From assembly GCA_002189035.1 (NCBI GenBank), contig NEEC01000015.1, positions 1-64,000 of the forward strand: a stretch of 64,000 nt of DNA. Direction: 5' to 3'. The notes beneath the pieces were generated by a model. That model saw nothing but the letters and a program-made list of their open reading frames with translations. It did no database searches and was not told the DNA's origin. Both the position numbers and the translations under genes were made by a program. Below are positions 35,209-47,039 of this stretch, in pieces. Position 1 is the stretch's first letter; the number at the start of each line of letters is the position of its first letter. Source of the DNA: Utricularia gibba. Its lineage: Eukaryota; Plantae; Magnoliophyta.

Positions 35209-38185
35209 TCAGATCTCATATGTCATGCCCACACGAAGAAGCCTATCTCGAGGTATAGCCAGAGTCTGATCTGCTTGACGGAAATTCTTCCTCAGGAAGT
35301 GGTATGCTTTGTTGATCACAAATTTCCTGAAGAAATTCGAATTATGATGTGCTACCACCTCCGTTTCTCCGATCAGGTAGAACACGCCGCTCTCCATTGC
35401 TCTCTGCAAAAACTCGATTTCCTGCTCCATGTTTTGCTTGTTGTTCTGACTGATGATGTGGACTTCACCGTTGGAGGAGGATGAGCTTCTAGCTCCAGGT
35501 GCTTGCTGTTCCAAGGTCTCTGGCGTCACATCGGTAGTGCTTTGTTCTGACTCGAGCATGTAAGCCTCATTGCGAATGAAGGATTTCAGCTTCTCGACAA
35601 GCTGGATCTCGAATTCACGTGGCTCAATGATGTCATTGTATCCGTACCTGGCCACACATCGGAAAACTCTGTATTCCTTTGGCTCCACCTGCCGGAGAAG
35701 GAATCGCTCCTCCGGCAAAACCTTGCTAATGGAGATCGGCTTTACAGAGACAAGAACGATAACAGAGTGCACTGAAGGTACATTGCGAACGAAGTGAGGG
35801 AAGATGGGAGGTATCCCTTGAACGAGCTCCGAGTAAAGAAGTCCAATGCCTGGGATTCTGGTGATGCTTGCATCGTTAGCCAAGTCCTTGATGTAGTCGC
35901 CAGAAACCTTGTTCGAGAGTTCGTACAAGTATCGCTGTACATAGGTGTAATGCCAAATCCCCATGATCGTCATCAGGACTATGGAGAAGGCGAAGGAAAG
36001 GAAACCTCCATGAATGAACTTGAACAAAACTGAGGATAAGAATACTGCCTCTACGGAAAAGAGAAGGCCGAAGAACAGCAGGATCAGCCATATACTCGTC
36101 TTCCATATCACGAGCATGATGAGAGTGACCATGGAGGTGGTGATCAACATCACAGTAACAACAGCGATTCCTGGCAGAAGAAGTGTGTGGGTAAGTCACC
36201 CCCACAGTATAACAGGAGTGAATTTCAAAAGAAACATTACTCACCATAAGCATTTCCTATGCTTGTCGTGGTTTTAAACGCTAACGTCACAGCGATACAG
36301 GCAATCATGAGAAGGTAGTTGATTTCAGGGATGTAAACTTGGCCTTCATGCTTGGCGGAAGTGTGGACGACTTTTACTCTAGGAAAGCAACCCAGACTCA
36401 GGGATTGTGAGACTATAGAGAACGTGCCTGAGATCATTGCCTGGCTAGCTATAATGGACGCCATGACTGCGCTCACAAGCACGGGCCAGTAAATTGGATC
36501 TACCAGGCAACACACAAATTAGTAAGACTGGACCATGCATACCATGGGGAGGAACACACGGAAACAGTAAACGCTGTAGTGAATGATGTAACCTACTTGG
36601 TGTAGAGGCATAGAAGGTGTTGGCAACTTGTTCAGGGAACCTGGTTAGATAAGCACCTTGACCGATATACGCCAGGGATATTGCTGGGAAGACGACGGTC
36701 GAGAAACTTATTTGTATGGCAGGGACATTGAAATGGCCCAGATCCGCAAACATGGCTTCAGCTCCTGGTCCAAGTACAGGCGACGATGATCAATTCAATG
36801 GTAGTAGAAATACCAAAAGAAAACCAAGTTGTGTGTTAGTACTAGCCTGTGATGCAGAGAATGACGCCGCCTAGGGATACCCAGCCCTCCCTGCCGTTTC
36901 TCCTGAAATAATCGACGATGTACTTGGGATTGAAGGCACGCAGAACAGTGACATCGTATTTGAACAAGTTGTACACCCCGATTCCTCCTATGAAAGCAAA
37001 CCACACGGCGATCGCAGGAGCAAAGGCGTATCCAACTTTATCTGTCCCAAACCGTTGCATCCAGAAGAGAATGATCAATATGGCGGTCGCGATGTACACC
37101 TTTGACTCTGAGACAACAGCGACCGGATTCAGGAGGCAGTTTTATGAAGTATAAAATAAAAAGAAAAAGCCCGCTCGAGGGGATATAAAACTGTGGTTAC
37201 CCCCGTGAAGACCCTTCATTCCTTCGACGGCAGAGAGAACTGGAAGCAATGCGCAAAAGTCAAAATAAGAACCAAACCGACGTACCAAGGACAGAGAGAA
37301 CCACCATACTTTGTTTTCTTGTTTTTTTTTAAAAAAAAAAAAAACATGCCTGAGATGCTCGGTGTGAGAACACCATCTCCGATTACCATAGAAGTTCCTA
37401 GAATTGTGGCAACAAAGAGCACGATTTTGGCGGCATTACTGGACTCGAGCACCTTTTTTATTTTCTCCGATCGCCCAAGTCGAGATGATGGCACTTCTAG
37501 ATGATAATTTGACAGCTTTTTATCCTCCGGTTGTTGATTTGGTATAAGACTAACATTTGCGTATCGGCAGATTTTGGAGTAGAGGGCAAACGTTCCTCCT
37601 AAAGAAGGAGAGAAAAAAGGCATGAGCTTTTGTTCATCTGCGGTGTTACTATATAGCGCTAAAATAAAACAGATAAGTAGGCGTGCTGCATACCATCTCC
37701 CTTGTCGTTAGCCGCCAAGACGATGAGCACGTATTTGATCAAGGATATTAAGATCAAGGTGTAGAGAATGAGGGAGAGAACACCAAGTATATCGCTCCTG
37801 TGTTTGATCCCGTTTTGGAAGGTACTTGAATACACGTACAAGGGCGAGGTTCCAATGTCGCCGTAAATCACGCCAATGCTCTGAAATGCCAACTGCATCG
37901 TCGTCTGCCAGCTCGCCTATTCCATCCCAGTAAAATTATGTATGAAGGGGGGGGGGGGGGGGGGGGGGGGGACGGGTGGTCTCCTAGATAAAACGGGAGA
38001 GTTAAGAAGAGGGAGGTTTGACTCACCGGTGTTCCGGCATGATGCCCGTGAGCTGATGAAACCACTCCTGCCTCCACCTGAAGCGAGTCAAAACGGCGGA
38101 GCCGCCCCACTGAGCTCCTCCTCTGGGTAGTTACGGGAACCTCCTGATGGGAGGTCCTTGCCTGCAGAGCGTTGGCGTCGCCCAT
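35209..38185 (-). CDS. HAK5: KT/HAK/KUP potassium transporter, HAK5 clade, tandem copy 1 (8 exons)
   Basis: [82 protein letters not shown]. Confidence 0.97.
37947..37971 (+). repeat. G25 homopolymer in intron 1 of HAK copy 1
   Basis: Direct read; exact length unreliable. Confidence 0.9.
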
Positions 38186-39965: not shown

Positions 39966-42874
39966 TCAAATTTCACAGGTCATGCCCACCCGAAGAAGCC
40001 TATCCCTGGGTATGGCCAGAGTCTGACCCGCTTGCCGGAAATTCCTTCGCAGGAAAGGGTACGCGTTGTTGATCATGAACCGACGTAGGAAGTTGGAATC
40101 GCGATGCGCCACCACCTCCGTCTCTCCGATCAGGTAGAACACCCCTTCCTCCATTGCTCTCTCCACAAATTCTATATCCTCTTCCTCCTCCTCCACCTTC
40201 TTTCGAATTCGCGGACTACTGTTGTCGTCCGTGGAGATTTCTGCTCCAACCACTTGTTCCTCCACATGAACCGCCGTAGAGTATGGCCTCACCACCAAAG
40301 AAGGATGTGGAGGACCTTCGATGCTCTGATGGTCCGAGTAGGGCATGAAATTGTCGTGACGGATGAAGGATTTTAGGCTTTCCATGAGCTGCATTTCGAA
40401 TTCCTGTGGCTCCTTAATGATATCATTGTATCCGTACCTAACCACACACCTGAAGACTCTGTATTCCTTGGGCTTCACCCGCCGGAAGAGGAATCGCTCC
40501 TCCGGCAGGACCTTGCTGATCGGGATGGACTTTATGGAGACCAGAATGATGATCGAGTGAACCGAGGGTATGTTGCGAACAAAATGGGGAAAGATCGGAG
40601 GTATCCCTTGCACCAGCTCCGAGTACAGAAGCCCGATGCCGGGGAATCTGGTGATGCGTTTGTCGTTGGCCAGCTCCTTCACGTAGTCACTAGAAACCTT
40701 GTGCTTGAGCTCATACAAGTAGCGCTGCCTGTTCGTATAATGCCAGATTACCATGACCGTCATCAGCACCACTGAAAAGCAGAGAGGAAGATAACCCCCT
40801 TCCACGAACTTGAACAGAACTGAAGAGAAGTAGGTCAACTCCACGGAAATGAGAACCAGGAAGAAGATAGCGATCAACCAGATGCTCGTCTTCCATATCA
40901 TGAGCATAATCAGAGTGAGCATCGAGGTTGTTATCAGCATCACGGCAACAACAGCAATTCCTGCAACACCAACAGGCAATTCATGTTTTTGTGTTGTCGA
41001 TGAGCACTAGCAAAGCAGCTGTGGTTGTGTACTACACCATAAGCGTTGCCGATATGGGTGGTGCTTCTGAAGGCTAAGGTCACTACAACACAGGCGATCA
41101 TGAGAAAGTGGTTGATTTCGGGGATGTAAACTTGGCCCCCGTACTTGGCGGATGTGTGTACAACTTTGACTCTAGGGAAGCAGCCGAGGCTAAGGGACTG
41201 AGAGATTATAGCGAAGGTGCCGGAGATCATTGCCTGGCTGGCTATGATAGACGCCACGACTGCTATGATAAACGTGGGCCAGTAAATTTGTCCTGCAAAC
41301 GCATTAAAAAAGGTGATTCCTTTAAGAAATTCAAGCCACCGAGTGAGTGGGGGGAGGAGCGGCAGAGAGTACTTGGCACAGAGGCATAAAAGGCGTTGCC
41401 AACATGGTCTGGGAATTTGGTGAGATATGAAGCCTGGCCAATGTAGGCGAGTGAGATTGCTGGCAAAACCATTCCTGTGAAACTTATTTGGACAGCGCGG
41501 ACATTGAAATGCCCCAGATCAGCAAACATGGCTTCGGTCCCTGCTTCAGGGAACAAGACGCAGTTAGGGCTTGCCAGCCAATGTTCGGCGGACAGAAGCT
41601 GAAGTTAAAACTACTGGCCTGTGATGCAGAGAACAACGCCTCCCAAAGATACCCATCCTTGTTTGCCGTTTCTTCTGAAGTAATCAAGTATGCACTTTGG
41701 ATTAAACGCGCGTAGAACGGTTGGATCGTACTTGACCCAGTTGTAGAAGCCAATCCCTCCTATGAAAGCAAACCACAAGCTGATCGCCGGCGCAAACGTG
41801 TATCCAACTTTGTCGGTTCCGAACCGTTGGCCACAGAACAGAAGGATCAATATGACTACGGAGATATAGACGGTGGATTCTGCAACAACAACACAATAAA
41901 AATAAAAAATAAAAACTTTGGCCTTTCTCGCAGTGTTGTGTCCATTTGTTCAGAGGGAATAACATCAACATGCTGTCACTCACCATTGCTTAGACCCCTG
42001 ATCCCATCGACCGCCGAAAGGACTGCATGAACAGCGAAACCACCATATAACATCTATCTGAGATAATCTTTCCATTGAAAAAATTTGACTGTTTAGGAAG
42101 CTTGCCTGAGATACTAGGCGTGAGAATACCATCTCCAATCACCATAGAGGTTCCTAAAATTGCACAAAGGAAGAGGATAACTTTAGCAAAACTGCTGGAC
42201 TCTAGTTGCTTTTTTATCTTCTCGGAGCGTCCAAGTCGAGATGACGGCACCTCCAGCTTATAATTCGACAGCTTTTTGTCCTCTGGTTGCTGATTTGGTG
42301 TGAGATTGACGTCCGCGTAACGACAAATTAAGGAGTACAACGCAAATGTTCCTCCTATGAAGCAAGGCGACTGCTTTTTATTCCCTTAGTAAGGATTCAA
42401 ATACTGTGCGATGAGAAAAAGGGCTGGCTGCATGCATACCATCACCGTTGTCGTTAGCCCACAAGACGATGAACACGTACTTGATCATAGGGATCAACAT
42501 GATAGTGTAGAGTATGAGGGAGAGAACCCCGAGTATATCGTCCTTGTCCTTGATTCCCTTTGAGAAGGTACTCGAATATACGTACAAGGGCGATGTTCCA
42601 ATGTCTCCGTAAATCACGCCGATGCTCTGGAACGCCAATTGCATCGTCGTTCTCCAGCTCGCCTGCCATACAGAGGGCTCCTTCAACCCAGATGATAAAT
42701 AAATATACACCACAACAACTCGTTAGAAGATTACCGAAACATTGACGTTGTGAGCGGCGTGCGTTGATGAGAACTTCCCAGCTTCAACGTGGAAGGAGTC
42801 GTCGAGGCGGCGGAGCGCGGTGCCTGGTGTCTGGTTGGTCTTTTCATCGAGGCTTACTTCATTCCCTCACCCAT
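39966..42874 (-). CDS. HAK5: HAK5-clade potassium transporter, tandem copy 2
   Basis: MGE(G)[16 protein letters not shown]; this start needs one extra G at 42864-42866. [37 protein letters not shown]. Confidence 0.95.
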
Positions 42875-44385: not shown

Positions 44386-47039
44386 TTATATTTCATACGT
44401 CATTGCGACACGGAGAAGCCTATCTCGAGGTATAGCGAACACTTCGTCCGCTTTGCGAAAATTTCTGTGTAACAAGTTGTAAACCCTGTTGATCATCAAC
44501 TTCCTCAGAAGGCAGGAGTCCTCAACGGCTACCACCTCCACTTCCCCCATCAGGTAGAACACCCCTTGATCCATAGCCCTCTGCACGAACTCCACCTCTT
44601 TCTCCCCAAGGACGAACGATTTCAGCTTCTCCACTAGTTGCATCTCGAACTTGTCCGTCTCCTTTATCACATCCTTGTACCCGTATCTGATGATGCACTT
44701 GAAAACTCTGTCTTCTACCTGCTGGAAAGTGAATCGTTCATCTGCTGAAACCTTGCTCACCGGAAGCGATTTGATTGAGACCAGCACCGTCACGGAGTGA
44801 ATCGAGTGCATGTTACGAACAAAATGCGATAAAATCGGAGGTACGCCGTGAACCATCTCTGACAAGATGAGTCCGATGCCGGGAAGCCTGTTTATGGTAA
44901 CGTCCTTGGCCAGGTCATGGAAATAGTCGTCTGAAAACTTGTGTTTCAGCTCGTACGAGTAACGTTGACCGTACACGTAATGCCAGAGTCCCATCATCGT
45001 CATGAGTAACATGGAAAAGGCCAGAGGAAGGTAGCCACCCTCGACGAACTTGAATATGACAGACGAGAAGAATATGAGTTCTATGGATATGAAAACCAGG
45101 AAGAAGGAAAGGATCAGCCATATGCTAATTTTCCATATCAGGAGCATGATCAAAGCTGCCATGAAGGTTGTTAACATCATCACACCGACAACCGCAACAC
45201 CTGATGCATGAATGGCATTAGAAGAAGGTGGCAGAGACATTTTATAAGCATGACTTTTTTAGAGTTGTTATTACCATAGGCATTGCCGATGTTGGCGGTT
45301 GTCTTGAAGACTAGGGTTACTGCAACACACGCGATCATGAGGAAATAGTTGATTTCTGGGATGTAAATTTGGCCTCCGTACTTGGATGATGTGTGCACGA
45401 CCCTCATTCTCGGGAAGCAGCCGATGCAAAGTGTGTGAGAGACTATGGCAAAAGTGCTCGAGATCATTCCCTGGCTAGCAATGATGGCCGCAATAACCGC
45501 AATCACGAATGTCGGCCAGTAAATTTGATCTGCGAAGCGAATAACACTTGTTTATGTTTCATTTATCCTTCCATGGCATGAGAAAGTATGTTTTACCTGG
45601 TATGGAGGCGTAGAAGGTGTTGCTAACATGCTCAGGGAATTTGGCCAAGTATGCGCCTTGTCCGATGTAGGCAAGGGCTATAGCAGGAAAGACTATGGTT
45701 GAAAAGCTAATCTGGATAGCATGAACACTGAAATGGCTCAGACCAGCATACATGGCTTCAGTTCCTGATGGAGGGCTAAAAGTGTGAAAAAAAAGCTCAT
45801 TTCGTGGTAATGATAAACAGATAATTAGAAGCAACTGGCCTGTGACACAGAGAACCACTCCCCCTAGAGACATCCATCCATTTTTGCTGTTTCTTTTAAA
45901 GTAGTCAATCATATATTTGGGGTTGAAGGCACGTAAAACAGATACATCGTACTTGAATAAGTTGTACATGCCGATTCCTCCTACGAAGACGAGCCACAAG
46001 ATGATTGCGGGAGCAAATGTGTACCCGACTTTTTCAGTCCCAAAGCGTTGCACAGAAAAGAGAAGGATCAATATCATGATGGCCATATAGACCACGGAGT
46101 CTGCAATAAAAACAGGAATTCATGGATGCATCTCACTCCAGGAATAGTCATGTGTACATAGTTAGTTAGTTGGTTACCGCCGTGAAGACCTTTGATTCCA
46201 CCAACAGCAGAAAGAACTGGAATTCATTCATGAAACAGAAAGGCAAGGTGACTATCATGTCAAGGTTGAAGTGATTGTTAGAGTGTCGTGTTTGTAACTT
46301 GCCTGAGATACTGGGTGTAAGAATACCATCTCCAATAGCCATAGAAGTTCCCAATATCGCGCAAACGAACAGAAAGATTTTGGCAAAGCGACTGGACTCG
46401 AGCTTCCTCTTGATCATTTGGGACCTTCTTCCACATGAAGACACCTCAACCTCATAATCTGACAGTTTTTCACCGTCACCCAGCCGACTATTCGTCAGAC
46501 TAATGTTCGCGTGGCGGCAAATCTTCATATACAACGCTAGCGTTCCTCCTAAACGACAACAACGTGAGTAGTTTAGCAGGCCGAGTTGTTGGTGGGTGTC
46601 AAAAGATGGTACCTTCGCCGTTGTCGTTAGCCCACAGAACGATGAAGACGTATTTGATCATGGGAATGAAGATTATGGTGTAGATTATAAGCGACATGAC
46701 TCCGAGCACATCATTCTTGTCCTTGATCCCGTCTCTGAAGATGGTGGAATAGACGTACAGAGGCGAGGTTCCGATGTCGCCGTAGATCACCCCGACGCTC
46801 TGAAACGCCAGGAGCATTACTCTCAGCCATGTCTCCTCCTCATCCTGTTCAGTTAACACAAAAGGGTTCAATAGCCAGCCCAGTTTGAAAAGTAGCCGTT
46901 ATACGTGAAGCACGAAATGAATGGCCACCGGAGGAGAGGGACTGGGGTTGCTCCCGGTTTCCAAGTCCAGAGAGTGAACGACGCGTGGGCAGCAGCAGGA
47001 GAGTCTGGTTTGATGATCATCAGCCGTTTCTTCCTCCAT
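44386..47039 (-). CDS. HAK5: HAK5-clade potassium transporter, divergent tandem copy 3
   Basis: All 8 exons trace without stop or frameshift; [48 protein letters not shown]. Short C-terminal domain. Confidence 0.94.

Follow-up and report, generated by a model that had tools for sequence, protein, structure and literature searches.

A divergent, transcribed HAK5-type potassium transporter gene in a tandem array of Utricularia gibba, a candidate for altered transport or regulation

The first 64,000 nucleotides of the Utricularia gibba contig NEEC01000015.1 (assembly GCA_002189035.1; positions 1-64,000, forward strand), which we call the window, carry three HAK potassium transporter genes in tandem. 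The third of them, copy 3, departs from its two neighbours at motifs that are nearly fixed in the family, and the question raised by this locus is whether such a gene has taken on another role, is on its way to being lost, or is still a working transporter. HAK5 is the main route of K+ uptake at micromolar concentrations and also an entry route for Cs+. Our analysis describes copy 3 as a divergent live member of a known family, and on the sequence it appears as a candidate for altered transport or regulation. We propose, with a probability of roughly 0.6, that copy 3 is a functional, transcribed clade I KT/HAK/KUP gene of the HAK5 type, sub- or mildly neofunctionalised, whose kinetics and/or activation by CBL-CIPK23 would differ from those of the neighbouring copies.

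The gene models were built from the sequence, the lists of open reading frames (ORFs) and an alignment of the three genomic loci. A tblastn search of the window with the reading frames of copy 3 located three collinear genes on the minus strand, at approximately 35.2-38.2, 40.0-42.9 and 44.4-47.0 kb, each with 8 exons separated by introns of 60-110 nt whose positions and phases are identical in all copies. Copy 3, a HAK5-clade gene, occupies 44386-47039 of the minus strand, from an ATG at 47039 to a TAA stop at 44388-44386, with introns of 60-86 nt and exons at 47039-46905, 46844-46613, 46548-46303, 46216-46178, 46100-45840, 45764-45597, 45529-45275 and 45200-44386. The coding sequence of 2151 nt encodes 716 amino acids (aa) with zero internal stops or frameshifts. 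The intact ORF of the original prediction was thus recovered, with the caveat that introns 3 (46302-46217, after exon 3) and 5 (45765-45839) begin with GC donors. We considered these donors as a sign of decay and ruled this out: both are present in all three copies, that of intron 5 is seen spliced, and all 14 splice sites of copy 3 are usable. The GC donors were inherited with the array and do not reflect damage, since copies 1 and 2 have the same two, and they predate the duplications, since gene B of Genlisea aurea (described below) has GT at both positions.

The exon pieces of copy 3 were aligned to solved chains named 'Potassium transporter 5' in the Protein Data Bank (PDB), in which the chain number minus 13 gives the AtHAK5 number. 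AtHAK5 (for example PDB 25jn and 25le) belongs to the same family and clade, and the pieces align to it without gaps through transmembrane helices (TM) 1 to 12, with E values between 1e-19 and 1e-77 and an identity of about 55-60% in the compared pieces. Exon pieces also matched the Pfam profile K_trans (PF02705) over positions 1-69, 71-114, 133-216, 275-357 and 359-449 of 454 (E 2e-6 to 1e-29), and the nearest named relatives of copy 3 are all annotated as 'potassium transporter 5'. The residues essential in AtHAK5, G67, Y70, G71, D72, D201 and E312 (PMC8133630), all have identical equivalents, as had been predicted from the letters of the gene. Likewise, the modelled K+ ligands T75, S76, Y79, T205, S209 and T309 and the K+-sensing Y450 of AtHAK5 (PMC11450230) are unchanged. 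Within the gene, exon 2 (46613-46844, TM1-TM2) carries the intact motif with the equivalents of G67, Y70, G71, D72, T75, S76 and Y79, exon 3 (46303-46548) those of D201, T205 and S209, exon 6 (45597-45764, TM6b) that of E312 at 45759-45757 within GTEAM, and exon 7 (45275-45529, TM8-TM10) that of Y450 at 45278-45276. Among the features of the clade I HAK5 type, copy 3 has Y450 and the upper-site ligands T75, S76, Y79, T205 and S209, and lacks the Phe at F130 and the ADLGHF motif.

The departures fall in three motifs. Leu126, encoded by the CTA codon at 46540-46538, occupies the F130 position of GEGGTFALY, so that copy 3 reads GEGGTLALY whereas copies 1 and 2 read GDGGTFALY with a TTT codon. In exon 6 the sequence is AMYAGLSHF where AMFADLGHF is canonical, which in the alignment to the solved chains corresponds to F315Y (45750-45748), D317G (45744-45742) and G319S (45738-45736). 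In exon 7, ASQGMISS stands in TM8 against the ASQAMISG of copies 1 and 2 and corresponds to A386G (45470-45468) and G390S (45458-45456); the same exon also carries Q397H, S398T, V407M and K408R, and G780A is a further substitution relative to AtHAK5. The Leu at the F130 position, AGLSH, SQGMISS and a residual GEK in place of a C-terminal loop, all reported in the original prediction, are present in the rebuilt gene model.

How rare these residues are was estimated from 380 fetched relatives. The F130 site holds Phe in 144 of 145 true motif hits and Leu in one; the D317 site holds Asp in 156 of the 157 sampled relatives and Gly in 0 of 157; the G319 site is Gly in 151 of 157. For a wider view we took as a reference 104 full-length angiosperm HAK5-clade proteins, chosen by a length of 760-850 aa. 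At columns at least 95% conserved in this set copy 3 has 45 private changes, against 8 each in copies 1 and 2; with the threshold set at 99% it has 24, against 3 and 2, respectively. The excess is concentrated at conserved and not at variable columns (Fisher p = 0.008). The private changes are spread over the N-terminal tail, TM1-TM2, the TM2-TM3 loop, TM6b, TM8 and the TM8-TM9 loop, with 13 positions within the C-terminal domain. A literature search found no paper on the solved HAK5 structures, on the D317 residue or on HAK arrays in Lentibulariaceae.

Selection on copy 3 was analysed with a Goldman-Yang codon model (GY94) with branch-specific ratios of non-synonymous to synonymous substitution rates (dN/dS, omega), using the three copies and 665-702 codons. 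On the copy 3 branch omega is 0.139-0.151, against a background of 0.141-0.148, and giving this branch its own omega brings no gain in fit (p = 0.92-0.96). A value of omega = 1 on the same branch is rejected, with twice the log-likelihood difference (2dlnL) at 105-107 (p about 1e-24). With gene A of Genlisea aurea as outgroup (353 codons) the omega of copy 3 is 0.11-0.13 and neutrality is rejected in all three topologies. At codons that are at least 95% conserved elsewhere omega is 0.082 in copy 3 and 0.044 in the paralogues, a difference of borderline significance (p = 0.052), and omega = 1 is again rejected (2dlnL 78). Copy 3 is therefore under strong constraint, with at most an approximately twofold loosening or shift at positions fixed in the family.

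The gene also appears in transcript data. Three public runs (X1, X2 and X3) from two studies hold parts of copy 3, in contigs with a depth of 2-6; the runs are presumed to be RNA, of which the spliced joints at introns 5 and 7 are the sole direct sign. Contigs of X1 skip exactly intron 5 (75 nt, GC-AG, in frame and stop-free) and exactly intron 7 (45201-45274, 74 nt, GT-AG), and other contigs end at exon borders. Together, the contigs from the two studies cover exons 2, 6, 7 and 8. The variant sequence of exon 6 is reproduced by X1 and X3, and thus by both studies, as is the short C-terminal loop, which contigs of X1 and X2 span without differences; an X3 contig covers exon 7. None of the marks of a pseudogene was found in copy 3: the frame is not disrupted, no splice site is lost, omega is not neutral and transcription is not lacking. 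The gene is thus not an unexpressed locus with neutral dN/dS, given the splicing of introns 5 and 7, an omega of about 0.14 and the rejection of omega = 1.

Several observations weigh against a functional shift in copy 3. The whole-gene omega is not raised on its branch, and a signal of positive selection is absent from the GY94 branch test. The twofold higher omega at conserved codons is borderline and fits mild relaxation or a shift of constraint as well as it fits adaptation. Part of the extra divergence of copy 3 is probably age or a generally higher rate, because its synonymous divergence (about 1.0-1.3 on its branch, against 0.45-0.67 for the others) is higher at a similar GC content of third codon positions (GC3); a composition shift as the cause was ruled out, with GC3 at 0.57-0.62 in all copies. 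What sets copy 3 apart is solely that its changes are concentrated at conserved sites. The replacement of Phe by Leu is conservative, keeping a bulky hydrophobic side chain, and its effect is not readable from the F130S mutant. An orthologue with the same changes was not found: searches with exon 8 gave nothing above 60% identity, in databases where close relatives of the species are barely sampled. The contigs are of low depth, and exons 1, 3, 4, most of exon 5 and the Phe-to-Leu codon lie outside their coverage. Finally, six coding positions of copy 3 (44914, 45357, 45387, 45407, 45645 and 46815) read differently in contigs of X3 and in the window; at a depth of 2-6 this is a weak indication, but four of the six differences are non-synonymous (D541E, M402V, A345T and M55I) and M402V restores the family-consensus Val at the position of AtHAK5 V407. 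These differences could be errors or strain differences.

Points of this kind could be taken to mean that copy 3 is simply losing constraint on its way to loss, with redundancy to copies 1 and 2 permitting damage and with the open frame and the transcripts as leftovers. The five-fold surplus of private changes in columns invariant across the family, an omega at conserved codons about twice the background, the preponderance of non-synonymous strain differences, the low contig depth throughout and two in-frame deletions in exon 8 would all be compatible with such a course. We nevertheless judge it quite unlikely. The value omega = 1 is rejected at p between 1e-18 and 1e-25 across every partition and topology; every known essential residue is intact; all 14 splice sites can be used, with splicing demonstrated for two introns; and the frame has been open through a long history, since the synonymous divergence of the branch is about 1 per site. 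Maintenance of a working gene, as proposed above, accords better with these results.

The original prediction went further and called copy 3 neofunctionalised, with altered ion selectivity or affinity and a possible uncoupling from CBL-CIPK control. What stands of this is a live and maintained gene that departs from its family at many fixed sites; a whole-gene omega equal to the background (p = 0.96) lends the rest no support. In its strong form, the idea is that F130L, D317G, G319S and A386G shift affinity or selectivity (K+ versus Na+, Cs+ and NH4+) and that loss of the C-terminal loop frees the transporter from CBL-CIPK23. The literature behind it was cited accurately. F130 is a proven determinant of affinity and selectivity: the F130S mutant of AtHAK5, selected in yeast for Na+ tolerance, has an affinity for Rb+ increased about 100-fold and a changed inhibition by Na+ and Cs+ (Aleman et al. 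2014, PMC4151339). It concerns the same residue of GEGGTFALY as in copy 3. Furthermore, the F130 and D317 positions are almost invariant in the family, and the changes cluster on TM6b and TM8, near the proton-coupling Glu. Against this, the mutant residue is a laboratory-selected Ser whereas that of copy 3 is a natural Leu, still bulky and hydrophobic, the direct K+ ligands are all unchanged, and an excess of non-synonymous change over the whole gene is absent.

The regulatory half of the same idea rests on the two ends of the protein. Exon 8 (44386-45200) encodes TM11-12 and the cytosolic C-terminal domain and has undergone two in-frame deletions: one of 3 codons, between QQV and EDRVF and near AtHAK5 residue 613, and a larger one between KSFVL and EVEF, where GEK alone (3 residues, 44607-44599) stands in place of the 50 residues of copy 1 and the 60 of copy 2. 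The missing loop corresponds to about 60 residues of AtHAK5 (about 654-713). Truncation of AtHAK5 at residue 633 abolishes its activation by CIPK23/CBL1, and truncations at 688 and 744 leave it only partial (PMC8133630), in agreement with the prediction that an activation region dependent on CIPK23 lies downstream of residue 633; that this region is needed is an argument for a change in control. The deleted stretch, however, is a hypervariable linker of the C-terminal domain, outside the Pfam domain model: copy 3 matches K_trans_C (PF22776) from 1 to 151 of 151 in one stretch (E 3e-29) with the loop absent. In the 104 HAK5-clade proteins the loop has 29-113 residues with a median of 83, in a set whose choice by length (760-850 aa) is biased against short loops, and the loops of copies 1 and 2 are already below the fifth percentile. 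In Genlisea aurea gene B it has been shortened independently to about 14 residues. Given this hypervariability, the short loops of copies 1 and 2 and the independent reduction in Genlisea, deletion bias in a compact, shrinking genome suffices to explain its loss, and does so as well as a release from regulation.

The N-terminus tells a somewhat different story. Exon 1 (46905-47039), the N-terminal cytosolic tail, was aligned with the 104 HAK5-clade proteins, and copy 3 keeps the Ser equivalent to S35 of AtHAK5, the target of CIPK23, at 46973-46971. The near-invariant context of this residue, KLRRVDSLNLEAG, is altered: positions -5, -3 and -1, which normally hold a hydrophobic residue, Arg and Asp, are all substituted, so that the family consensus LRRVDSLNLEA (LRRxDS) becomes PRVVHS. 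The private changes of exon 1 at columns at least 95% conserved are L18P, R20V, D22H and A28T. A degraded SnRK3-type context argues for altered control and the retained Ser against it; the degraded S35 motif is in our view a better, though still indirect, hint of changed CBL-CIPK regulation than the loss of the loop. Of the predicted uncoupling from CIPK, then, the part built on the loop is weakened by the hypervariability of that insert and the complete K_trans_C match, and the part that survives comes from the degraded S35 surroundings. Overall, we regard strong neofunctionalisation as unlikely.

We return to the milder proposal of a working, somewhat altered HAK5. With the essential residues and ligands in place, copy 3 is most probably still an importer of K+ coupled to H+. 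In its transport kinetics and/or its response to CBL-CIPK23 it probably departs from copies 1 and 2. About 45 residues that are nearly invariant in other angiosperm HAK5 proteins have been replaced, including F130L, F315Y/D317G/G319S of TM6b, A386G/G390S of TM8 and the surroundings of S35. A possible location for the effect is suggested by KimA of Bacillus subtilis, a K+/H+ symporter of the same fold family, whose D36, D117, E233 and Y377 have conserved equivalents in copy 3. The C-terminal domain of KimA is compact and lacks the linker of the plant proteins, as in copy 3; KimA belongs to a distant bacterial subfamily in which the GVVYGD motif is absent, whereas copy 3 retains a motif of the GVVYGD type. 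In KimA, N237 lies one helical turn after the proton-coupling E233 and lines a cytoplasmic tunnel together with residues of TM8, and K+ binding in this tunnel has been proposed to cause trans-inhibition (PMC6994465). By their position in the alignment, the changes of copy 3 in TM6b, after E312, and in TM8 would fall at the site of a KimA-like tunnel. If anything has changed in transport, proton coupling, release or trans-inhibition would thus more likely be the targets than the TM1 selectivity filter, which is untouched.

Taken to its end, this line of thought makes copy 3 a re-tuned HAK5, in which D317G with F315Y, G319S, A386G and G390S would alter proton coupling or cytoplasmic trans-inhibition, and in which the degraded S35 motif and the lost linker would give independence from CBL-CIPK23. 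We consider such a combination a speculative and rather improbable one. If true, copy 3 would import K+ constitutively, perhaps for nutrient uptake in a specialised organ of a Lentibulariaceae-like plant.

The dimeric nature of these proteins offers one more explanation, namely that copy 3 does not transport and has become a sensor or regulatory subunit, modulating copies 1 or 2 as their partner. All solved HAK5 entries contain two chains, KimA is a dimer and HAK/KUP proteins are dimeric; a change of role would be expected to leave purifying selection alongside altered conserved residues, as seen here, and D317G adjoins the proton-coupling Glu. On the other hand, a non-transporter would have no need of the K+ ligands, the gate Tyr and the proton-coupling Glu, all of which are retained, and heteromers are unsupported by any evidence. 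A role of this kind is very improbable, and a transporting copy 3 remains the reading that we favour.

In order to place the array, maximum-likelihood trees were computed. The three copies group together with 99-100% support, with the partial gene A of Genlisea aurea as their sister, and the group lies inside the Lamiales HAK5 proteins, which also include the nearest relatives of copies 1 and 2 (65-67% identity). The position of the trio as sister to gene A indicates an origin of the array inside a Lentibulariaceae-like lineage. Identity is 70% between copies 1 and 2 and 58-59% between copy 3 and either of them; the branch of copy 3 is the longest, at about 1.0 against 0.3-0.4. A protein tree with copies 2 and 3 as sisters and a three-fold acceleration of copy 3 was set aside as not robust, since the approximately unbiased (AU) test does not reject the grouping of copies 1 and 2 (p = 0.44). 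Under codon likelihood an initial split of copy 3 from the other two is favoured by 4-5 log-likelihood (lnL) units, and counts of shared derived states are nearly balanced (25, 16 and 16). Copy 3 was probably the first of the trio to branch off. A profile search with an alignment of its exon pieces returned only angiosperm HAK5 proteins, ranked by their likeness to the scaffold, and no close relative of copy 3; an earlier exon-piece alignment, on a Linum scaffold, was dropped because its exon 3 piece was misplaced.

Gene B of Genlisea aurea (KE530136.1, 5475-8126) offers a parallel. It is likewise a long-branch HAK5-clade paralogue in a tandem pair of Lentibulariaceae, lying downstream of the canonical gene A on the same contig, with a loop of about 14 residues. 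Unlike copy 3 it keeps GGTFALY and ADLGHF; it carries Y450F (IGNAFG), uses GT at the two donors that are GC in the trio, has its exon 6 split by an additional phase-0 intron, and shows a GC donor following exon 6b. Orthology of gene B with copy 3 was considered and rejected: gene B falls outside the clade of the trio and gene A, joining it to copy 3 costs 33 lnL units (AU p = 0.04), and the intron features differ.

The neighbouring copies share with copy 3 the same 8 exons, intron phases and GC donors and a similar omega, and differ from it in their canonical motifs and longer loops. Copy 2 lies at 39966-42874 of the minus strand (GGTFALY, ADLGHF, SQAMISG and a 60-aa loop), and copy 1, of 771 aa, at 35209-38185 of the same strand, with canonical motifs and a 50-aa loop. 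Exon 1 of copy 2 is without an in-frame start: the ATG at 42874 reads MGEGMK and is followed by a TAA at 42856-42854, and the conserved N-terminal frame is shifted by one base across a run of G (42854-42874, minus strand). Either the assembly is in error here, or the frameshift is genuine and would truncate or inactivate the N-terminus, the CIPK23 site included. In copy 1, intron 1 (37940-38000) contains a run of about 27 C on the minus strand. The window itself starts, from position 1 to about 400, with a telomere array of CCCTAAA units with scattered CCCTGAA and CCTGAA variants, which places the HAK array within about 35-47 kb of the chromosome end.

The residues that set the affinity, the selectivity and the kinase dependence of HAK5 are targets for breeding and engineering, and what is known of them comes almost wholly from laboratory mutants of AtHAK5. 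Copy 3 would add to these a natural protein tested by selection, which combines a change at F130, the loss of the Asp of ADLGHF and a minimal C-terminal domain, and the canonical copies 1 and 2 that adjoin it are built-in controls, making the array an attractive natural experiment. If the kinetics of copy 3 or its dependence on CIPK23 differ, swaps between copy 1 and copy 3 would map the residues responsible; if they do not, positions regarded as invariant in the family would be more tolerant than has been assumed.

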